DNA from: Thalia democratica | Lineage: Eukaryota | Length of the DNA stretch: 64,000 nucleotides | NCBI GenBank assembly: GCA_965202585.1 | Contig: OZ241826.1 | Location: 91,636,001-91,700,000, forward strand | Direction of reading: 5' to 3' | In this document: piece after piece, positions 61 to 57,089 of the stretch | How the letters are laid out: every line of letters starts with the position of its first letter | Position numbering within the stretch: the first letter of the stretch is position 1 | The notes under the pieces: generated by a model | What the model was told of the DNA's origin: nothing | Database searches by the model: none | Seen by the model: the letters and a program-made list of their open reading frames with translations, nothing else | Translations under genes and position numbers: made by a program

Positions 61-591
61 GGGAACAGGTCAAAATTGCATGATGTTCAATTTTGAAACC
101 GAGGGTCATTTTGCACTAGAGTAAAAAATTTATAAAAAACAAAGAAAAAAAAACTACGGACTGAGGGTAAGGGTTAAGTTTAAGGGCAGTAATGATATTA
201 AAAAAAATAACAAATAAAAATTATTATTATTATTATAAATGAACAAATTAAAATAAATTAATTAAAAAGAAAAAAAAAAGCTACCGACCGAGGGTAAGGC
301 TTAAAGGTATCAGTAATAGTAAAAAAAAAAGATAACTAATAAAAACTATTATTACTTAATATAATTGATAAACTTATTAAAAAGAAAAAAAAAACGCTAC
401 CGACTAAGGGTAAGGGTTAAGAATAACAGTAATAGTATAAAAAAAGTTAAAAAAAAGAAGTTTAACCTGTGCAAAAATGTCTTCGTGCAAAGTTGTCTGC
501 TGGTGCAAAAGTGTCTTTGTGCAAATGTTTTTTCAAGAAATTTTGTCCCCTTGAGCAATTTTGTACGCTCGTGCAAATTTGACAGCTACCC
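61..591. mobile_element. Non-autonomous DNA transposon (MITE), PIF/Harbinger-like, with A-rich internal subrepeats
   Basis: Imperfect terminal inverted repeats GGGAACAGGTCAAAATTGCA (61) and TGCAAATTTGACAGCTACCC (to 591). Subterminal (TC)GTGCAAA repeats and three internal copies of (A)CCGAGGGTAAGGGTTA. Related pieces at about 6190-6397 and 59660-60010. The superfamily is inferred only from GGG..CCC ends and TTA/TTT flanks. Confidence 0.5.
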
Positions 592-2725
592 TTTACTTTG
601 AAAATATTTGACATTTTTATTTTTACACTCCGGTAGAATTAAAAAGCAATTAATTTGCCTCAAATATTTTTTATGATTTACTCTCGTCAAAGTATTTGGA
701 AATAACTTAGAAACTTTTAAATCATGCGTATAACTATAGCAGACCAGTTTTTATTAACAAATAGTTTCACAGAGTTAAAATAGGCACTATTAAACCAATT
801 TTTTTAATCATTGACGTAGAACCATTTTTAATTAAAATGGTTTCTCAATAGAAGCGAAATTTTCCCCTAATCTCCTTTTACTTTGGGAGCTGTAACTAAA
901 CACTGAAAAAACGTTTTAAGATAAAGTTCGGTGCTCGAGTAATCGTGTGGTTATTTTTAAATCTTGAACTTATAGTGCATTATACATTGTTTTATTTATT
1001 TTGTATCTATTACTGGTTTTATGATTTTTTATTGTTTTATTGTTTGTTTAGTTTTTAGACGATATGTTTTATGGCTTGCTGAAACATAAAACTGTTTTAA
1101 TAATGAGAGTATTTGTAGACTTTTTTTTGTTTTAGGACTTATTATAAATAGTAATTTTTTTTAAAGTATACTCTACTATAAATTCAAAGTTTTAATAGGT
1201 TGAATTTTGTTACTTCAACAAGGGTATAGTATAATAACAGTTTATTTTATTTTTTTTTTTCATATTTTTTTACCTTCATCCAAAGGCTTAAGTTGCTTAG
1301 GGGATTTTATTTTCAAAAATTCAACCAAGTTTGAAATTTCATTGGAAATTACAAGCTATTGATAAACCTAAGCATCATCTATTAGATTGTAGTTATTATT
1401 ATAAGTTTATTGAACAAATAAAAATGCTCAAAAAATTTGGTCCTAGGACCTGGTGCACGAAAAACCTTTCGGTTATCTAGTTGTTCTACACTACTTCAAT
1501 ACCATTTAAAGTTTTGTCCAGAACAAATATGAAATAATATATATGTAATATAAAAATAAAAAATGTAACACATATATGTAGCATGTAAAATGTTATAAAA
1601 ATTGACAGTATGTAAATGCTTAAAACTTCAATCAAAGGACCTAGTGTTGAGCAAGACATCTTGGTCTACAAACAAATAGTTTGTCTCTACTGTGTTTAGC
1701 TGCACATGTAGTTGCAATATTGATAAACTTGAGTGGCCTAATTGCTAAGGGATATCAATACTAGCATTGAAATCTCTCTGAGTTGTACATTACAAAATAA
1801 AATTCAGTTGTGGACACATATGAAAATTAGAAAAAAATAGTAAAAGTTTTTTGGAAATTTTCTAAGCTTGACTTATAGTTTTTGTAGCAATATAAATTTT
1901 TATAATAGAAATATCAATCTAAATTTCTAAAAAATAAATTAAACTTAGAGAATAGCTCAAAACAGAGTTTAAAAAATTGGTGTGTAGCTCAATGATCAAA
2001 AGGTCTTTTATCACACAAAATCAAAAATAAAAACCAAAAAACCAAAAAAAAAAAAAATCATTAAAAAATTTGGTCCCAGGACCTAGTGTACAAAAAAACC
2101 TTTTAGTTATTGAGTCATACACCAGGATACAGTTAAATGTCATGTCCAGGATTGACCATAGATTGTTATAAGCATTTTTTTTTGCTGTACAAAAATGAAT
2201 TTTTCAAGTCAATGTTACCCTCAATAAAAGCTTATAAACATAGTATTGATATCAAGATTAAAGGAAAACAATAAATAACATCAAAAATAATAACCTTTTT
2301 TTAACAAAGTTGAACTTTTCAAATCTATGTATTTTCAAATGAAGTAAAGAGCTGTAAGTTTTTTTTATTATTGATTGATAAAATGTAAAATATTTTTAAA
2401 ATAAAGAAAGGCATTAACAACAATTTAATTTTAATTACTGTTTTTTTTTATTATTTTATCTGTCAAAAAAGTCTAATTATGTAACAATATTCTTTATACT
2501 TATTTTGTGTTACTAAGTTTTGTACTTGTCTTGATTTATGCTTTATTTTCTTTTCAGATAAAATTTAGATTTTGATTAATTTTAGTTTTTTGACTTGAGA
2601 GTTTAAGTTTTATAAAAATTAGCTTTTAAGCAATAGTTAAGCATTTTCTGTCATAGTAAATTTTTATTTTTTCTTTAACTTACAGCAGCTGTATGTTTCT
2701 TTATTAAGTTATGTACCTGTTTTTA

Positions 2726-2739
2726 GTTGCCGTGGTAAC
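2726..2739. promoter_or_regulatory. RFX X-box-like palindrome GTTGCCGTGGTAAC
   Basis: Close match to the RFX consensus GTTGCCATGGCAAC, in a locally GC-richer patch about 1.2 kb upstream of the TONSL start. Motif match only. Confidence 0.25.
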
Positions 2740-3938
2740 TAGGTCGGTATTTTTCCTCTCCATAAACACTTGTCCATGGGTTTGAGCTTCCCAGATTTTA
2801 TAGTTTTTAAGTTTAGTTTTATCCTTTTAATAGGTAAAAAAATAGACTTGCTACAAAAGTTTTTCATCAAAATGTGTAATTTGGTTTATTTTTTTCCTAA
2901 TTGTTATAAGACTAGAAGAAGCTATAAATTATATAGTTATCCTACTGAATTTCTTAAAATATTTAATTTTTTGTTTGAAAAAGTGATTACTGATGTTTTT
3001 TTTTAACATATAAAAAAAAAGGAACCAACTAGTTAATGCATTAATCATTTGAAGTTTTTAGAAATTAATAATTTATTTTAGGTTATTTAAAACCACTGCC
3101 TATAAAAATCAAATTACAGTTTTTTAGTTTAATTTTCCTGGATATGTTAGTGAGGTGGTATTTTGCACATCCAAAAGAATACGCAATAAAAGTTGCATAT
3201 ATGTTCTTTTATTTGAAGTTGGTTTGGTTAACTTTCAGCACTTTTTTCATTTACAAAGTTTTGTTTGATTACAGAAATTTGAATAAAAAAAGCAGTGCAC
3301 AACTGTAAACTAAAAAAAAAGCATTAAAAACTATATTGTCAAGTACCTATGCCATTTTGAAACTAACACTTGTTAAGAATTTTCATTTACTTGTTATTAA
3401 TAGTTTTGAAATTTTTTAAAATTGAACATAAAATTTAGATTAAAACCAACCATAAATTTTACATTAACATAACCTAATTTGAGTTTTGTGTATGCTTTTA
3501 AGATCTTATACTATAGTTGTTTTAAAATAACTATTTGTTTATTTTTTTATAATCAATATAGAACATTTGTGTTCTCAAGTTTACTTTACAAAAACCTAAA
3601 AAATAAAAAGTTTTAAAGATTTTACCAAATTAGTTTTTTTCTGTTTTAAATTAATTTTATTTTAGTTAAATTAGTAAGTATCCAATGAAAAAGTCAAACA
3701 AATTGTTTGTTTTTTTAATTTTCTTAATTAGATTACATATATTTTATACACTATGAAAATATCTTAATGTTAGTTTATTAGTATATAAATACAAATTTGA
3801 GTTATTAAAAATTACATTATAAAGCAATGACTATTTATTTTAGCTAAAATAAAAATTCAACATGTCTGTATGTTTGAACCCTGTTTTTTCAGCTTTTAAA
3901 AATTCAAAATATTTTAAGAAACAAATTGGAAAGACCAA

Positions 3939-6900
3939 ATGAACAAAAAGATAAAAAGTAAGTTAATGAAGTTTTTTATATGAAAATAATTACTCAAAAT
4001 ATTAACTTTTGACTAAAATAGAAAAGAAACATACATAAAGATGTTAGAATATTGAAAATTTTTTAAGCTAATTAATACAATTATAAAGTAACAAATATGT
4101 TATGCTGTTTAAACTTTTATTTTTGATAAAAACTCCAAACTAAGTTTTATTTAACTATCAAGTCTTAAAATTTTGTTTCACAAATGCAATATAAATTGTT
4201 ATTTTAGGATTTTATTTTTATTATAAAAAACTTTAATTATATATATTGAGATTACTTAAATTTATACATTATTACACTTAACTTTTGCTTTGTTCTATTT
4301 AAAAGATAATTAATTTAAAGTACACTTTAGTTTCCTAACTTTTTAATTAGTTGTTTAAAAAAAAATCTGTTTATTTTAAAAGTTAGTTGTAAATTTTCAA
4401 ATGAATTAAAAAAAAACTTAAACTAGTTTTTATTAATAAATATCTAAATAATATGTTTTGTATTCCTTTAGTTTATTTTTTTTGCATCAAAGCATGTTCA
4501 AGTTATTTTTTGCTGTTGCCAAACAATTAAGAGTCTACTATTGATTTAAATTTTTTGTATGTAACAACTATATTATTTTTAGAATATCTAAAACTCAAAG
4601 AGGCTGCAGAAAAAGCAAATGACCTGACTCAGCAAGCATATTATTGTAATGTAATTGGGTTTGAGTATACTAAAATTGGTTAGTTGTGCATTTTGTTCTT
4701 TTAGTTTTTCACACTCAGAAAAATATGTATACTTTGATATTTTATTTGTTTCATTATTTAAGTTTGTTGTTGATTTTTTAGCCTCATTGAAATTTACAAT
4801 TTTTTTAATTTGAGTTGTACTAATTATAGCTCACTTAGTTTCATCGTTTCATCTATATAAAAAAAGCTTTTAGTAAACTACATTTTATTAAAGCACACAG
4901 GTTAAAAGTTACAAATCATTAAAAAACACTAAAAATAACTTTTCTGGCCAAATGAATTGCATTGTTTAAACTATAAAATAGTTATAAATGAAAATTGTGT
5001 AGTGTGTGAAAAAACATTTGCAAAGCCTCACTTAGAACATGCTTTTTTCAACATTATATGTTTTTCTTATAAATTTCTACGCTTCGTTATAACATGTAAA
5101 AAAACTGATGAATGGAAAGTAGTAATTTAATTATTTATTAAGGCCATTAAGGTTTTTTTTTTAATTTAGTCTTATTTTTACATAATTAAACAAACTATTA
5201 GTTAACTAAAAAGGAAAAATAAATAAATAATTAACCACAAATCATTAACCTACAATTTAAAAAAAATCACTTTTATACCTTCTTAATCTAATGTTTTATA
5301 AATTATGAATAATTTGTAAATAATAATATTTTCAGTTTCTTACTATTTTTTAATTTACAAACAAAAAGAATCTTAAACCTTGGTCTTAGTTAAAAATTCT
5401 GAACGTTTTTTCTTATCTGATTCCTAAAAATTATTTGTCCTATTGAAAAGTACTGAAAGTTGAAAGTAAATAGCTTTAAATATGAAGTAGGCAATATATT
5501 TTGAGGAAGTTTTTCAAAAATATGAGATAAGTAGCAATGAAAAATTTCGATTTGATAAGTTTGTATAAGACATTTTAGAAAACTTATTAGACATAAAAAG
5601 TTAATTAAATATGTTTTGCTCTACAAAAAGTATCTTATAGTACATACTTCCTATGTTTTAAAATGTTTTAGTAATTTAGTATAAAAAAATAATATGTCAG
5701 AAATATTTATGATGTTTACCAATCAAATTTTTTTAACTTGTTAGTGCTGTAAAATTGACCCTGCTATGTCATTTAAATATATTAACTGTTTTCTTGAACT
5801 AAAAATAAAGGTAATTATTTAACTCTTAACATTATTATTCATCAACTTATCAATGTTTTTGATGTGATCCTTATGCTAGTATTTAAAGTGGAATTCAAAC
5901 TAATTAGTTGCTTATTATAACAAGTAATTGTAATTAATCTTTATCTTTAATATAAGTTTTTTTGTATCTCTTTTTTACTGAAAATATACATATTTCTTAT
6001 ATAAATAGTTTGGTTAACGTAGCCTACCTTTTATACAAATGAGAATGATGAAGAAAAAGGAATTGGATCAAGTAAAAAGTTGGCCCTGGGGTTACCATTT
6101 TTACTTATTTTTAGCTGGGGTCATTTTTTTACTTCATAAAAAGTTATAAGTTGTAAGTCAAAAGTTTGTTAATTAGAAAAAAATAGTTATAAATGAAAAA
6201 CGACCAAAAATAAGGGTTAGGATTAACAGTGTTAGTAAAAATAAAGGAAAAAAAAAAAAAAGTTACCGCCCAAGGGTGAGGGGTTACAGTTATAGTAAAA
6301 AAAAATATTTAAAAAAATACAAAAGGAAATATTTTGAACCTATCCAAAATTGACACATTGAGCAAAAGTGTCCCTTCGTGCCTATTTGACACCTACCTTT
6401 TCCAAAGTGGGCAAGTTGGGGTAATTATTTACTAAAATGTATCTGGGGACATTATTTTTACTTGTTTTAGCTACGTTTTTTTACTTGATCCAATGTATTG
6501 ATTAGAATTTACAAATTTGTCTTTATAATCCTTACCACTTCAATTCAGTTCTAAATTCTATTTTGATGACCGTAAACTAGTATATTAAAGTATATAATTT
6601 GTGTACTAAAAGTTTAGAGTTGTAGTTTTGAGTGGTTTAAATAAAAATTAGCTTTATTAAAACAACATTTTTAATTGAAAGGGGAGTATGACTTGGCAGT
6701 TGAAATTCACACACAAGAAAAACAGTTTTGCAAAAAGTTAAAAGATCAAACAGGCGTTGCGGTGGCTCAAAGAAATGTAAGCTTTAGTTGTTTTTTTCAT
6801 CTACAGAATATTTGTAAAAATTAATTTTAAAGTGTGTGGTATATATATTTATAATGTTAATATAGACATCTTTTTAAAGCTACAATAAATAATTTTAAAA

Positions 6901-48631: not shown

Positions 48632-49545
48632 CTTTATTTAAACTTAACTAGAGTAAACAAAAATTCTATAATAAAAAACTAACAGCTCTAAATATGTTTT
48701 AATGATTAATAAAATTAACTAAAACTAACTTCTACATATATTTGCAGAATTAAAAGTTTTAATACAAAATGAAAACTCTCTTGCTGATGATTTTTATTAC
48801 TAGCATCATACATTGTCATGCACACAAAACAACTTCAAGCAATGGTAATCTAATTTATTATTTAAAAAAATTTTTATTAGTTTGCCGTTATTTAATCTTT
48901 AGCTTCATATAAAGTTAATTGTTAGTTTGTTGTGAAAAGTTAAGCGAATAAAAACCTAATTAAAAACTAAAAAACTAAACGATTTAATCTAAACTTTGTT
49001 TATGTTTTTTGTTTATATAAGTATTCTTTCTTATCAGGTATACTAGTATTAGTACATTTATACATTAAAACTATGTAAACTTTTTATTATGAAACAAGCT
49101 AGTTACTTCTAGTTCTGCCAGTACTATTTCTAAAAGTTTTAATTATTTTTAAACTACAAACTGTAAAAATACTGTAAAAACCTAACAATAGGATCCTTGA
49201 AAAACTTCAAATTTCTAGTTTTTTTTAAGCATACAAGTTATATATACATATTTAGGTTGATGGTGACTAAAATAAAAATTACTCTACTTGAATAAAAAAG
49301 TTTATAAATAAAAAAAGGTAAAATATGTTTTGTAAATAAGATGTTCTGCTTTGTAAACTTTGTTAAATTTATTTAGTGTTACCTTATTATCCAACAGATT
49401 TGTTTTGAGAAGAAAAGTAAAATTTTGTAATTTAAGCTTTATAAAGAAGACAACATTTGTTTTAAGGGACTTTCAACACACATCTACTTAACAGTTTATA
49501 AACATTTATTGTAGTGTGCTTTTATATATAGTGTAATATTTTACA
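48632..49545 (+). repeat. Copy A of a duplicated segment of about 920 bp (copy B 55157-56115); the Gypsy element lies between the copies
   Basis: Long colinear matches, for example ATTTAAACTTAACTAGAGTAAACAAAAATT, TTTTATTAGTTTGCCGTTATTTAATCT.TAGCTTCATATAAAG and TTTAGGTTGATGGTGACTAAAATAAAAA, with an offset of about 6.5 kb. Confidence 0.85.
48769..48844 (+). CDS. Putative first coding exon of a secreted protein (signal peptide), copy A
   Basis: MKTLLLMIFITSIIHCHAHKTTSSN followed by G|GTAATC. Basic N-terminus, hydrophobic core and C-H-A cleavage-like site. Downstream exons were not identified. Confidence 0.4.
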
Positions 49546-49678
49546 AGCAAAAATTTTTTTTTAAGTTTTTTTTGTAACTTACTAAATTACTTTAAGATTT
49601 TTATTTGAAACAAACTCTACGTTTCTCGTTGAAACGTATTTAGCTTAATTTATATTTCAATTAAAAGTTACACAATAC

Positions 49679-49782
49679 TAAATAAATATATCTTTCTTTG
49701 TTGAGTTTATTTACAAACTAATTAAAAGAATGATAAAATCTGTACAAGAAAACATAATGAAAGCTAGGTAAATACTTATACA
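49679..49782 (-). repeat. 3' LTR (104 bp)
   Basis: Base-for-base identical to 54786-54889. On the element strand it reads TGTATAAG...AATAAA...TTTATTTA. Confidence 0.95.
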
Positions 49783-49791
49783 TCTCCCCCC
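49783..49791 (-). other. Polypurine tract
   Basis: GGGGGGAGA on the element strand, immediately before the TG of the 3' LTR. Confidence 0.85.
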
Positions 49792-49980: not shown

Positions 49981-52900
49981 TTAAACAGGTTTGTATGTAC
50001 CGCTTTCGGCATCATAAATCTTTCTCCGGGTTCTTACACGACCGGAACGACGCAGTTCATTTTCTGGAAATACTCCATCGTCATTTAAATTTCTTTCAAA
50101 TACCCTAGATTTATCATTAGGGTCCAAACGAGACAATACACCATTTTTCTGATTTGTAGAGGATTGGCTTTCATCAGTGCAATTTGAGTCCTCAGGTGAA
50201 AGGAAGGTAGCTGGTTTCGCTTTGCAAATTTTGTCAAAGTTATCTCCAGCTTTGAAACGTATTCCTTTATGGGAGCGCACACAATCAAAACTTTCCTTGG
50301 AATCTTTTCTCTCATAGTTGCCAGAAAAAACCAACTTCTGCGTTGGTATGTTTGCTTTTCTAAGATAAGGGATACTATTTTGAGATTTGCAAACAGGAGG
50401 ATTAAATTTTCTTAAAAACTTTCGATTTCGTACAGTTAAGCGACCTGATCCATCAATCTTGACAACATACTGATGATAGTCTTTTAGATCTACTATTACA
50501 CCACTTTTCCCCCACTTATTAGGGAAGTTACCTGCTTGATTCTGTATCATGACATGATCACCGCAATTCAATGGTAGCAACAATCTTGTGTGCTCACTTA
50601 AATTCTCGAGAGACTTAACATAACGAGACCTAAGAGCTTCTTCCTTTTTACTCCATGCGTTACGCCAAATGTTTAAGATCTGCGGGTTATTGTAAGCCAT
50701 GATACTCTTCCTGAGGTAAGGCAAGGAGTCCTTTAAATTTCTTCCAAGAAGGATCTGTGCAGGTGATAGTTTGCATCCTGGATCAGGCGTGTTTCTCTGC
50801 ATAAGTAAAGCTTGTACCATTTTGTCATTATTTAGTTCACCACTTGAACCAACATTCTCCATTAACAATCGCTTAGAAGCCTTTACTGCTAATTCCGCCC
50901 TACCGTTTGACACTGGATGATATGCAGATGACATACGATGGTGTATACCCCATCGTTTCAGAAAATCTTTGGTTACTTTTGCAGAAAACTCTGGACCTCC
51001 ATCAGAAGATATTTCAACTGGAACACCAAAAGTCACAAAAATACGACGCAAAGCTTTACACAGCCCTTTTGAACCAGAATCATTTGTACCCAATTTGATT
51101 CTTTGTTGTTCTGTCCATCCTGAAAGTCTGTCGGCAGCTACAAAATAATACCAACCTTTGAACTGAAAATAATCACAAACAATTGACTCAAAAGGAACCT
51201 TTGGAATCAATGGTTCAATTGGAGGTAGGCGAGGATTGCTTGGTGCAATTAAGTTGCAACTATTGCAATTTTCCCGACAGCCTTGAATGTCATTTGTTAT
51301 TCCCGGCCAATAAACAATCGATTTTGCTCGCTCGTTCATTGCAGTGACTCCTTGATGAGCAGAATGCAACACTCTTAAAACCTCTTTTCTTAATGATGGA
51401 GGAATAACAATTCTATACACATCATCCTTAAGTATACTGCTAGTTGATAGAAACTTATTATGATCAAGTTCTCGTTTACGATCATCACACATAATGACCC
51501 CATCCATCATAAACAAAGAATAGCGAACTATCCAAAACTCATGCAATTCTAATGGTAGGTGGTCTTTGGTCTCTGGAAAACCAACTTGAACATAATGAAT
51601 AAGCTTCATCATTTGTTTATCTTTTAAAGTTTCTTCTTTAACTCGGTCAAAAGTCACAGCTTGAAAATTGTCACCTACTTAATTACTTGCAATGATACAC
51701 TCACTGTCTGGCAAACGTATTCCAGCTAAAATTTCAGAAGCACTTATCTCAACTTCATCTTTTGTTTTATGTACGGTAACCACTGGATGACGTGACATTG
51801 CATCTGGAGCAAGGTGTAGTTTACCAGGTTTATGTAGAATCTTGAATCGCCATAAAAGACTTCTCTGCTTTAACCGGAAAAGGCGGGGGTTTGCAATTTC
51901 ATCAAGTGTTCTGTCTCCAAATAATTTAACCAGTGGTTTGTGATCAGTCAGAACCAACAAATTATCACATCCTTGTGTGAAATACCGTGATTGCTCAAGT
52001 GCCCATACAATTGCAAGGCTTTCTCTCTCTACCGCAGCATAACGTGATTCAGGAGGTCTAAGAAAGCGAGAGCCTGCTAAAACAATACGCCATCCGGTTT
52101 GACAACATCCTGGCACAGCAGACTTACAAGAGCAATGTTTCTGCGACAAAAAGTAACCAATACCAGTTGTAGACCAGTCTGGCTGTATACAAGTGGGCTT
52201 TCCCAAATCAAAAATTTGTATTCCCTTTGTTATAGCTGCAACTATAGCTTCTCTTGATTTGTAGAATGTATCATCTAGCTCATCATTCCAGTAAAATTTA
52301 GTTTTTGGACTTAATAATGGCTTAAACACAATCATCAAATAAGTCAATTGGTTGTAGTGTGAAACTTGGTGCACTAAACCAAACCATGATCGCACATCTG
52401 TTATTGACTTTGGTATAGGAAAATCTCTAATAGCATTTATGAACTTTTCTTGTGGCTTAATTTCAGATTTCGTAATAGTAAAGCCAGCAAAGTCTATTTC
52501 TTTTTGTGCAAATTGAAACTTTTCAGGATTGAGTACAACTCCATTTTTCCCCATTAAATCTAAACAGTCAATCATACGCCACCAATGATCAGCCAACTTC
52601 TCATCCCATAAAACAGTGTCATCAACGCATTTTGTCTTTCTAGGTATATCTATTATGATTTCATCATACCTGCGCGTATATGCATCTCCACTTGCCAAAT
52701 AACCTTGTGGTGCTACTTTGTAGTAGTACCTCCCCCATGGAGTGAGAAATGTTGTGAGATGATGATCTTCTGGACGAAGTTGTACTGAATGAAACCCATT
52801 CCATGCATCGGTCACACTTTTCCAGGTGTTTGCAGGAATTTCACATACTTGAATGAATGGAGGCTTTACATGATGTGTTTCTCGTACACAATACTTATTT

Positions 52901-54756
52901 AAAGGTGAAAGGTCAACAACTCTTCTACAGCTACCATCAGCTTTAGCAACCACAACCATACGATGTACCCAAGTAGACGGAACACCAACTGGAGTCTTAC
53001 CAAGCACACCTAATCGAGTATCCCTATCCAAAGTTTCTTTTACTTCATTTTCCCAATGTTTTGGAATTGGGGAAGCAGTTGATATTGCTTTTGGAATGGC
53101 ATCTGGGTCAATATGAATTTTCAAAGGTGGACCTGTCATTTCTGGAAGCAATTGGTGAGTACATTTATTAAATGTAGATGATGCGTACCTATCTAAAAGC
53201 CATTCTCTCATTTTTTGATTGTTTGCAGGAATGCAAGCAAATGGCAACTCCTTTGGCCTATCAGGGGGAGGAGTTCTAGGTATACAATCACAAGTTTGCA
53301 GTTCTTCATGGACAGTGCAGGATTCAATGGTCGCACCAATACGAGGAAAATCATGATTTATTATGCCAAGTGTTATGCAGGCATTTCTTGAAAGGAAAAA
53401 CCTGTCAGTACATGGGCTTATATATACCATTTCTTTTGCAACATGAACTTTACCTTGTACATCTTTAGCCATTAATTCCATAAATATAGCACCAGTTATT
53501 TTGATCTGTTCTCTGTTGGCCGCTAACATTTTCCTTTTAACTGGTATAAGACTTGACTTCTTAAAACCATGTTTGAGGTAACTATTAAGGTCCCATAAAC
53601 ATGACTGAGCACCCGTATCTGTAACGACATTAATTTTGCAATAATTTTGTCTAGGGCATTTTATATTCATCTGAGTGTATGCTTGTTCATCAATAGAAGC
53701 TTTTAATTGAATTGTTGGGTGTTTCAGTGACACTGATGCTTTCCATCCATTCAAACAATCAAAGACGTAATGATCAAGTTTTACTACATTATCATTAACA
53801 TCAACTGACTGATCAAAATTTTGTGTATATGATCCACCAACTAGAAGTGCATTCGTCTCATCTGCACAATTGTTGTCACCATGATAAACTTTTTTCCTGG
53901 ATTTAATCCAGCATTGCTTACATGTATTACACTCAATATACTTGTTATTTTTCCTGCTCCAAATAAATTTTGTAGATGTTTTACTACATATATTACAAGT
54001 TATTTTACCACTTGGTCGTTTTGTAATTTTCCTAAAGGATTTGTACGAGGAAACTGAGGCAGTAACAGCAGGTTGTGTCATTGCATCTCGTGCCATCTCT
54101 TTTGCCTCAATAAAACTAATTGTCTCATTGACATCTTTCTCGTCTAAACTACCCCATCCTAACACCTCTTTGCGTATATCCTCATCAGCTAAACCGGTTA
54201 CCATGACATCTTTAAGGATAATGTCTGTGAAATCTATCATTTGGTTACAGCCATCCTTTGGGTATTTACATGAGTACGAGCATGTACTAGCTTTTCCCTT
54301 TAAACGGGCAGCAAATGATCTCGTGTTTTCAGTCAAATCCTGTCTTGTACTAAGAAAGTCTGATCGTCGTACAACAACTGAAACAGGAATAACTGCAAGC
54401 TGCTTGATCATCCTTAAAAGCTCTTGCTCACTTAAATTTACTACATCATTATGTCCCTTCAAAATAGCATCGCCTACATCTTCCTCACAGCACTGGTACA
54501 GTTGACGATGCTTTTCTACTTCTGTCATTTCCATACTATCTTTAAAAATAGTCCACTTCTGCAAAAATATGCTCCAACCCTCTTCATTGCAGTCTCTCCC
54601 TATTCGAGGACGGTCCATTTTTGGAGGCTTTGGTTTTGAAGAATTTGCATTAATGTGAACGTTGTTGTGAATGATAAGTAAAGAAGCAGCTACAGAAGCA
54701 TCAACGTCTGGTGTTTCATATGTGCAACACTCAAGAGGGCATTTAATCACAGGCAT
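49981..54756 (-). CDS. Gag-Pol polyprotein, one frame interrupted by a single TAA (51679-51681) between RNase H and integrase
   Basis: ORFs 51679-54756 and 49981-51657 are in the same frame. Protease DTGAQS; RT DAWNGFHSV, QGYLASGDAY, CVDD; RNase H PDWS, ERESLAIVWAL, TDHKPL; integrase HSAHQG..CNSC, VCDYF, SSDGGPEF, SNGRAE; GPY/F-like GDHVMIQ. Confidence 0.93.
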
Positions 54757-54774: not shown

Positions 54775-54785
54775 AGATTTTATCA
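54775..54785 (-). other. Atypical primer-binding site TGATAAAATCT, complementary to the element's own LTR
   Basis: Abuts the 5' LTR, lacks the TGG that pairs with tRNA CCA, and is the exact complement of LTR 54838-54848. Confidence 0.7.
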
Positions 54786-54889
54786 TAAATAAATATATCT
54801 TTCTTTGTTGAGTTTATTTACAAACTAATTAAAAGAATGATAAAATCTGTACAAGAAAACATAATGAAAGCTAGGTAAATACTTATACA
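54786..54889 (-). repeat. 5' LTR (104 bp)
   Basis: Identical to 49679-49782. Confidence 0.95.
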
Positions 54890-55156
54890 AATACTAATTT
54901 CAATTATTGTTTGGTTAGCTATGAATCATTCATATAAAACTAATATAAACCCATGAAACGAGTTTTTCTTCTAATATATTAGAAGATAACATTTTTGTGG
55001 TAAGAATGAAGCAATTGATTCTAACAAAGTTACAATCAACTTTTTTAAAACTATGATTTCATCACTCAAACCACATGCTTTTAAATTTATTTGTTTATTT
55101 ACAGAAAAAGTAACGACGATAATAGTTTATTAATAAACAAATACTCCTTTTTTTAA

Positions 55157-56115
55157 GTTATATTTAAACTTAACTAGAGTAAACAAAAATTTTATAACAA
55201 AAAAAAACAGAGACAGCTCTAAATATGTATTAATGACTAGGATCATTATATCTAAAATAATTTCAGCATATATTTGTAAAATTAAAAGTTTTAATGAAAA
55301 ATGAAAACTCTCTTGCTGATAATTTTTATTATTAGCATCATATATTGTCATGCACACAAAACAACTTCAAGCAAAGGTAATCTAATTTATTATTTAAAAA
55401 TTTTTATTAGTTTGCCGTTATTTAATCTGTAGCTTCATATAAAGTTAATTGTTAGTTTATTGTGAAAAGTTAGCGAAAAAAAAATAAATTATGAACTAAA
55501 AAACTAAACAATTCAATCTACACTTTGTTTATGTTTTTTTGTTTATATAAGTATTCTTTCTTTTTCGGTATACTAGGAAAATTACAACTATACATTAAAA
55601 CTATGCAAACTTTATACTATGTAACAAGCTAATTACTTCTAATTCTGCCAGGACTATTTCTAAAAGTTTTTAGGACTGATATGTGTGCGTTTTCTTTTTA
55701 ACTTCAGTAATTGTTTACAAACTTTCAATTATTTTTAAACTATAAACTGTAAAAATTCTGTAAAACCTACCAACAAGATTCTTGAAAAACTTCAAGTTTT
55801 TAATTTTTTTTTAAGCATTCAAGTTGTATATATTTAGGTTGATGGTGACTAAAATAAAAATCACTCTACTTGAATAAAAAAGTTTATAAATAAAAAAGGT
55901 AAAATACGTTTTCTAAATAAGATGTTCTGCTTAGTAAACTATGTTAAATTTATTTAGTGCAACCTTTTTGTCAAATGGATTTGTTTTGAGAAGAAAAGTA
56001 AAATTTAGTAATTTAATTTTGTAAGGAAGACAACATTTGTTTTAAGGAACTTTCATTAACAGTTTATAAACATTTATTGTAGTTTGTTTTTATATCTAGC
56101 GTAATATTTACGAGC
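55157..56115 (+). repeat. Copy B of the duplicated segment of about 920 bp
   Basis: Colinear with 48632-49545. Confidence 0.85.
55301..55376 (+). CDS. Putative first coding exon of a secreted protein (signal peptide), copy B
   Basis: MKTLLLIIFIISIIYCHAHKTTSSK followed by G|GTAATC. Same length and frame as copy A, with mostly conservative changes. Confidence 0.4.
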
Positions 56116-57089
56116 ATAAGGTTAATTTTATAGTCAAATTTATTAATTTTTCAAAAAACATAAAACTTTAGTGTCAATTATTTTCCTTATCTTAAAAGCT
56201 ATCTATTTTTTTTTATTTTAGAGAACGCACCTTTGTCTTTAATTTAAAAAAATAAAATTTGGTTTGGGGTAGGAATTATTTCATGGGGTCCCTCCAAAAA
56301 TAAAGGTTTTTTTTATTTTTCATTATTATTGTTTTAGAACCAAAAATTTTTTTTTTCTATTTTTTTTTATTTTCCCTTATTTTGCATCTTATTTAAACTC
56401 TTAAATGTTTATTTTATAAATAATTTTAATATCTTTTACAATTTGGCCCCAAAGCAAAATGATGTATATTACACTATCATTTGCATTGGCCATTTCCTAG
56501 ATAAAAAATTGATAAAAGGAAAAAAATTAATAAGAATGTGAATTACGACAAATTTAACTAAATTATTTTAGTTTAATTAAACTTGTTTGAGTCATATCAA
56601 TAAAAAGCTTCTCAAATAAAATAAATAACATTGCAACCGACATTTACACACTTCATGCTAAAAACATAAATATAAAAAGCATATAAAAAAGTGCTGCTTA
56701 AGAAAACGAACATGTATTAGGCTTTATGTAGGTAGTTAAAGACCAAAATTTTTAGTTAGGCACTGCCAGTTGGGTACTTTGAACATAGTGCAAAAGTGCG
56801 TACCCAAGCGGCAGGTCATTGTGTTTTGCTAAAAATTGTATACTTAGTGACCTACAAATGTACACAGATGCTTTTCTTGTTTATTACGGTAATAACAGTT
56901 TAAGAGTCACTTGTCTAATCTTCGAAATTTTTCGCAACTCGTCTACAAGAGTTTAAGACTACTGCTAAACATTAGCCTTTAAACAAAGTGAAACCAAGTT
57001 TACTGTTTTCCTACCAACAAGACGAATACAACATTTTCACCGCTAGCAGCTCGGTTTATTGCGCAAAAACGCATTTTCGAAAATTCTTC

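Follow-up and report, generated by a model that had tools for sequence, protein, structure and literature searches.

To our knowledge, priming of reverse transcription by an element's own RNA has been demonstrated only for the Tf1-type elements of fission yeast, and the primer of Tf1 is 11 nt long. Documented or predicted self-primers include Tf1, Tf2 and Tj1, several fungal elements and the vertebrate sushi group (PMC4600332, PMC6934838). In Tf1, a 5' segment of the RNA that lies in the LTR pairs just downstream of the LTR, RNase H cuts and cDNA synthesis is primed (PMC4600332, PMC5341516), and a U5-IR stem-loop is needed as well, according to the work of Lin & Levin (1997, 1998) as it is cited in PMC4600332. 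Similarly, sushi-ichi and the vertebrate Tf1/sushi group are predicted self-primers (Butler et al., 2001, as conveyed by PMC6317226 and PMC4600332), and the same prediction has been made for plant Tcn1 chromoviruses and for the TAR lineage of Ty1/copia, with Houba and Osr-1 (PMC6317226). In the full-text literature, which leaves subscription papers and Repbase outside its coverage, no report of self-priming in an invertebrate or a non-chromoviral gypsy element was found. As regards Tcn1 and TAR, we know of no covariation analysis on the scale of the one presented here. Among the metazoan elements, the Mag lineage is characterised by a length of about 5 kb, short LTRs, a single gag-pol frame and the lack of a chromodomain, and is widespread in marine invertebrates including cnidarians. 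Mag, SURL, Jule and Hydra2-1 belong to this lineage of Ty3/gypsy (PMC2774666, PMC6238403); the Mag cluster is present in cnidarians and chromoviruses are not recorded there (Llorens et al., 2009, PMC2774666).

The locus under study lies in a window of 64 kb (the whole stretch of DNA that was analysed) and is a Ty3/gypsy retrotransposon of 5211 bp on the minus strand (54889-49679). An earlier note, made from the letters of the window, had given it a 5-bp target-site duplication (TSD), and GTATT indeed stands on both flanks (5' side, 54890-54894; 3' side, 49674-49678), fixing the boundaries of the LTRs; other 5-bp TSDs accompany the sister copies. The 5' LTR (54786-54889, minus strand; TG...TA) and the 3' LTR (49679-49782, minus strand) are direct repeats of 104 bp with 100% identity. 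A single gag-pol frame of 1592 codons (49981-54756, minus strand) encodes protease (DTG), RT, RNase H and integrase, the order along pol being the DTG motif, RVT_1, RT_RNaseH, Integrase_H2C2 and rve (Pfam). The frame is interrupted by one in-frame TAA (51679-51681, minus strand) that splits RNase H from integrase in a copy with identical LTRs, and several sister copies retain uninterrupted gag-pol frames. No gag, zinc-knuckle or protease family of Pfam was matched in the first 600 residues of the polyprotein, and the gag is thus divergent. A Cys/His motif, M..x.CP...C...T.DV..A.AAALL..HN..H, is found clade-wide at the N-terminus of the polyprotein (window 54670-54756, minus strand; alignment A2). 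The polypurine tract GGGGGGAGA (49783-49791, minus strand) abuts the 3' LTR, and G-rich tracts like it precede the 3' LTR in most of the relatives examined. Outside the element, two direct copies of about 0.85 kb that are 82% identical (48716-49563 and 55249-56130) flank it out of register with the LTRs; they are either a host duplication or some other repeat, and the insertion of the element took place within or next to it.

The host genome (802 Mb, AT-rich) harbours at least 25 copies of this family at 97-100% identity, many with identical LTR pairs and each with its own 5-bp TSD. The family has been recently mobile, since its copies are near-identical, their LTRs are identical, their TSDs are distinct and several of their frames are intact. 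Parts of the element are also present in four marine metatranscriptome runs, as short contigs without ends or strand for which DNA carry-over is possible. One RNA contig (run X1; window 54829-54851) carries a variant of the segment discussed below, AGACTTTATCA instead of AGATTTTATCA, and the partner change to AGACTTTATCA is absent from the metatranscriptome contigs that span the matching position next to the LTR.

The earlier note had read the LTR and the sequence beside it as the geometry of Tf1-style self-priming, and the letters and coordinates on which it relied proved correct. The sequence abutting the 5' LTR is TGATAAAATCT (54785-54775, minus strand), which follows the last LTR base with no spacer, lacks TGG and is the candidate primer-binding site (PBS). 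Its exact complement, AGATTTTATCA, lies inside the LTR (54848-54838, minus strand; LTR positions 42-52), with 11 of 11 nt pairing, and is the proposed self-primer. This segment stands downstream of the TATA-like TATAAGTATTTA (54876-54887, minus strand; LTR 3-14), which from its letters is a candidate core promoter, and upstream of an AATAAA (54813-54818, minus strand; LTR 72-77) situated between the LTR 11-mer and the LTR end. The 5' LTR would comprise a U3 of about 41 nt, an R starting at LTR position 42 and a short U5. Furthermore, AGATTTTATCA is preceded by C, which creates an initiator-like CAG, and its last two letters are CA, with T as the next base. On either strand of the 64-kb window, four occurrences of the 11-mer were counted, always inside the element, against 0.10 expected from shuffles.

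The fourth of these occurrences, which the earlier note did not mention, repeats TGATAAAATCT in the same sense at 49802-49792 (minus strand), directly 5' of the polypurine tract. It is kept in most sister copies, and judging from the letters it might pair with the primer segment as repeated in the 3' R. A relative with 83% protein identity (L027) holds a 10-nt relic of this polypurine-side 11-mer, mismatched to its own PBS, and the 11-mer is absent from a second family of the same genome (family 2) and from 43 other loci scanned. A general role of the polypurine-side copy in the mechanism of the clade was therefore rejected, given its absence from these loci and the lack of covariation in L027.

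A wider sample was available for the pairing of LTR and PBS. The protein search turned up hundreds of relatives whose polyprotein occupies a single frame of about 1550-1650 residues and is 58-66% identical in RT-RNase H. The DNA was examined for ten of them, picked for the length of their contig or for their identity and with no regard to sequence features. One of these (L028) has no LTR pair; the nine informative relatives, family 2 and the window family make up a first set of 11 lineages. The post-LTR site differs in each of the 11, yet it perfectly complements a segment of its own LTR that lies 41-52 nt upstream. Thus, primer AGATTTTATCA faces site TGATAAAATCT in the window family, AGATTTTACA faces TGTAAAATCT in family 2, and GACTTCCTCA faces TGAGGAAGTC in Nematostella vectensis (L029); the corresponding pairs are AGCACAAACA and TGTTTGTGCT in L040, TGAGCCCGTCA and TGACGGGCTCA in L042, and AGTCGATTCAATCA and TGATTGAATCGACT in L043. 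The anchored helices of these lineages measure 9-14 bp when primer and site are taken from the same lineage vs 2-6 bp when they are taken from different ones. In the alignment of primers and sites (alignment A1), 99.1% of the cells pair, and two-sided changes are found in eight of ten pairs (41 cells), values that none of 500 shuffles matched; sliding the partner by 1-3 columns lowers the pairing to 39-46%. Beyond position 10-11, pairing in these first 11 lineages is at chance level.

A scan of metagenome contigs added 80 further loci with 50-64% RT identity, and an unconstrained helix scan was applied to the 300 nt upstream of the polyprotein start (perfect helix of at least 11 bp, loop of 25-80 nt). 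Such a helix was found in 45 of 61 metagenome loci at 50-64% RT identity, against one of 610 shuffles and three of 223 ORF-internal windows. A few of the scanned loci, for example L059, L060, L091 and L093, show no clear helix, and in some helix-less contigs the LTRs are truncated or rearranged. Both sets combined provide 44 distinct pairs of primer and site, with the pattern ...CA(T) against (A)TG..., in which the helix extends over 8-17 bp (modes at 10 and 14) and the loop over 28-72 nt, clustering by subclade at about 40-50 and 65-72 nt. The co-variation of LTR 11-mer and PBS among relatives, which the earlier note had named as a check on its proposal, is thus borne out by compensatory changes across 44 distinct lineages. 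These include stepwise compensatory series, for instance among L082, L086, L097 and L084; one series goes from AGTTATACTTATCA to AGTTGTACTTATCA to AGTTGTGCTTATCA to AGTTGTGTTAATCA, with the own site matching at each step. Wherever the LTR end can be fixed from both LTRs, it is also the exact starting point of the 3' arm, and in members of the second set with both LTRs present the last LTR base pairs too. Moreover, TGG at the post-LTR site was found in none of the 44 lineages, and in many of them the ORF starts 10-40 nt downstream of the site, which leaves no room for another PBS there.

Several further features of the junction were observed. Where LTR...A meets TG..., an ATG is created in all lineages whose helix has the CA(T)/(A)TG form, and in L042 (1499-1512) the called polyprotein ORF begins at this junction ATG, the PBS being read as codons. 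Two contigs (L044, positions 62-5449, and L068) hold tandem elements with a shared LTR (LTR-internal-LTR-internal), in which the 'LTR' repeat extends into the PBS and gag start of the next element.

These data bear directly on the possibility that a host RNA (the 3' end of a tRNA, a tRNA half or another small RNA) primes at the post-LTR site and that the complement in the LTR is incidental. Priming by tRNAs or tRNA halves is the rule for LTR elements, and two more distant relatives described below do have TGG-type sites; nevertheless, the site here is devoid of TGG, and one conserved host RNA cannot fit 44 different sites, each of which is perfect to its own LTR. Among these sites are those of the two families that share one genome, which are one base apart, with the difference compensated in the respective LTRs. 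A host RNA is therefore the least probable of the explanations weighed here, and an extremely unlikely one. The search for tRNA genes returned none in the window or in 295 kb of host genome, while the whole-genome search with a tRNA model scored almost solely a 16-kb tandem array. In that array (G000 contig C6, about 22.75-24.12 Mb), the same tRNA-like sequence recurs some 60 times at a spacing of about 16.0 kb, with an orientation switch near 23.32 Mb; the C6 repeat is a megabase-scale tandem array of a 16-kb unit, which is possibly organelle-derived DNA or another large repeat.

A different objection is that the helix may be conserved as an RNA structure for some other purpose, for example packaging, dimerisation or translation control at the gag start, and that the primer is something else. 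Covariation tells only that the pairing is selected or copied and not what its role is, and the gag ATG, which lies 10-40 nt downstream in many lineages, overlaps the site in L042. However, all lineages with a defined LTR end have their 3' arm exactly at it, and a packaging or translation stem needs no such start; between LTR and ORF there is no other candidate PBS; and perfect pairing with almost no G-U pairs or mismatches suits template copying better than selection on a stem. A purely structural role is, in our estimate, very unlikely. Self-priming is the reading that these properties fit: the 3' arm should stand at the LTR end, given that primer extension sets the boundary of U5, and pairing almost free of wobble and mismatch is expected if the site is recopied from the primer in each cycle. 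Similarly, the sharp outer edge of the helix, which in most lineages coincides with an initiator-like YAG or TCAGTT motif, fits priming specifically and not a generic RNA stem.

The geometry of Tf1-style self-priming is thus supported well beyond the single locus for which it had been proposed, by 44 distinct covarying lineages with a site that lacks TGG in all of them. We hold, with a probability of roughly 0.85, that the element is one member of a large clade of marine-animal Ty3/gypsy elements which lack a chromodomain and use their own RNA to prime minus-strand synthesis. By analogy with Tf1, from which the transcription start, the cleavage and the strand transfers are inferred, the transcript would begin inside the LTR, its first base falling on or beside the A of an initiator-like YAG (54848 in the window element). 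The first 10-14 nt of the RNA (AGAUUUUAUCA here) would fold back across an R-U5 loop of 28-72 nt and pair with the site that begins at the first post-LTR base. The RNase H of the element would then cut at or next to the conserved CA|U junction. Synthesis from the freed 3'-OH would run through U5 and R and yield a strong-stop DNA, which would measure about 52 nt in the window family (LTR 53-104, with the AATAAA inside) and would transfer to the 3' R. As plus-strand strong-stop synthesis would copy the attached primer, the PBS would be rewritten from the primer in each cycle, keeping the two arms perfectly complementary.

The proposed start can be compared with the letters at the outer edge of the helix across the 44 lineages, where A stands at +1 in 26, G at +2 in 25 and a pyrimidine at -1 in 29. 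In the subclade with 14-nt helices, the segment starts with AGTT after TC or TT; TCAGTT is the classic insect initiator, with its A as +1. The initiator-like motif of the window element is C-AGATT, with the A at 54848, and a TATA-like motif lies 39 nt upstream of this position, a spacing somewhat wide for a start at 54848. The YAG of roughly one lineage in three lies 1-6 nt outside the helix, and the primer of these lineages may carry unpaired 5' bases or the start may be a different one. The pyrimidine-rich tract with AG before the primer was also considered as a splice acceptor; this was set aside because no single exon boundary fits the positions of the AG, which the helix includes in about half of the lineages but not in others.

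As regards folding, the helix is retained in the folds of all 11 lineages of the first set, and most of these folds show a hairpin directly after the predicted cut site along with a small hairpin in U5. In the window element, the 129-nt leader is no more stable than its shuffles (z = -0.4), and the helix is present in both the MFE and the centroid fold. The additional TTCTTT/AAAGAA stem of the earlier note is possible as a pairing, and the MFE and centroid folds adopt five of its pairs, as a TCTTT/AAAGA stem around the AATAAA in a predicted hairpin adjoining the primer (54802-54836, minus strand). The constrained loop of 28-72 nt and the predicted hairpins inside it suggest one folded unit, which counts against priming in trans, whereby the same 5' RNA segment would be supplied by the second RNA of a packaged dimer or by the transcript of another copy and not by intramolecular fold-back. 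The sequence data fit cis and trans pairing alike, and the primer and site arms are common to all copies of the window family; pairing in trans is nonetheless most unlikely in our view, and it is a variant of the best explanation and no true alternative to it.

Whether self-priming in this clade is related by descent to that of Tf1 depends on where the clade belongs. The chromodomain search gave no hit in the window protein or in six relatives at E <= 0.01, and the precomputed Pfam lists of the 120 best hits of the protein search are likewise free of chromodomains. In Foldseek, the AlphaFold model of the window RT-RNase H (pLDDT 80.8) gave the reviewed gypsy-type polyproteins Tf2, opus, gypsy, Ty3, 412 and 17.6 as its best hits, with matches of about equal quality (E 1e-30 to 1e-34), and the identity in this region amounts to 19-21% with Tf2, 24% with opus and gypsy, 22-23% with Ty3 and 22% with 17.6. 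A likeness of the RT to C. elegans K02A2.6 was dismissed, the identity being only 13%. Furthermore, a search of 50%-identity representatives produced a graded series of relatives, two of the more distant of which were examined: in L045 (44% RT identity) the LTR ends in ...CTTACA and is followed by TGGCGCTGCGAC, and in L046 (38% RT identity) it ends in ...GTAACA and is followed by TGGCGCGGTCGGCAGGA. Both sites are TGG-type PBSs, and neither L045 nor L046 has an LTR complement of even 6 nt. In L045, too, the ATG of the polyprotein arises where LTR and PBS meet, and the frame continues across the PBS.

The claim that the element stands outside the Tf1/sushi chromoviruses thus receives indirect support from the lack of a chromodomain, an RT that is no closer to Tf2, and TGG-primed relatives at 38-44% identity. 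Since the nearest relatives with a readable primer type are of the tRNA type and Tf2 is far more distant, self-priming here probably evolved separately from that of Tf1/sushi. The clade occurs in cnidarians and in many marine metagenome contigs. A fuller account, which the comparisons favour to a modest degree, is that an old non-chromoviral clade of marine-animal Ty3/gypsy elements, with at least 44 lineages, gained self-priming independently from tRNA-primed ancestors and uses the capped 5' end of its RNA as primer.

The clade offers a second, probably independent origin of self-priming for comparison, in an abundant and recently active group of animal elements whose nearer relatives use tRNA. 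If true, self-priming is a recurrent solution in LTR elements and not the hallmark of one lineage. The clade also bears on whether self-priming or tRNA priming is the ancestral state in LTR elements (a question discussed in PMC3601003). Its 44 natural variants serve as a set of compensatory mutations that delimits the primer and marks out both the cut-site motif CA|U and the adjoining hairpin. Apart from mechanism, annotation is affected, as LTR pipelines that demand a tRNA-type PBS will misjudge such elements. Defence is concerned as well: protection by 3' tRNA fragments directed against PBSs (reviewed in PMC7472051) would miss such elements, and the clade, if the reading is true, would escape any host defence aimed at tRNA-type primer-binding sites.

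When compared with the described systems, the mechanism itself is known; what appears to be new is the clade in which it is found, along with its probable independent origin. The predicted primers (modes of 10 and 14 nt; 11 nt in the window element) come near the 11 nt of Tf1. Mag elements are alike in general traits only, namely the length of about 5 kb, short LTRs, one ORF, the lack of a chromodomain and the marine distribution. In contrast to the terminal motifs ...AACA of Mag C and Mag A (PMC3601003), the LTRs of the present clade run from TG to TTCA or TTTA. The predictions for Tcn1 and TAR resemble the present one in being drawn from complementarity and in lying outside the fungal and vertebrate Tf1/sushi group, but they concern plant hosts and another superfamily or clade. 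The sushi group shares an animal host, gypsy affiliation and predicted self-priming, and differs in consisting of chromoviruses related to Tf1. The closest likeness in geometry is to Tf1, Tf2 and Tj1 of S. pombe and S. japonicus, which also lack a tRNA-type PBS, have a 5' LTR segment of the RNA that complements the post-LTR site and are proposed to be cut where the duplex ends, next to a stem-loop (PMC4600332, PMC5341516). The folded hairpin beside the predicted cut site recalls the U5-IR stem-loop of Tf1, as far as the latter is described in the citing paper. Tf1, Tf2 and Tj1 are, however, chromoviruses of fungi, whereas the elements described here reside in animal hosts, lack a chromodomain and are self-primers by prediction from their sequence. 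They further differ from Tf1 in a very short R-U5 (41-72 nt), in an LTR of only 104 bp in the window element and in the TGG-type sites of the nearest relatives examined.
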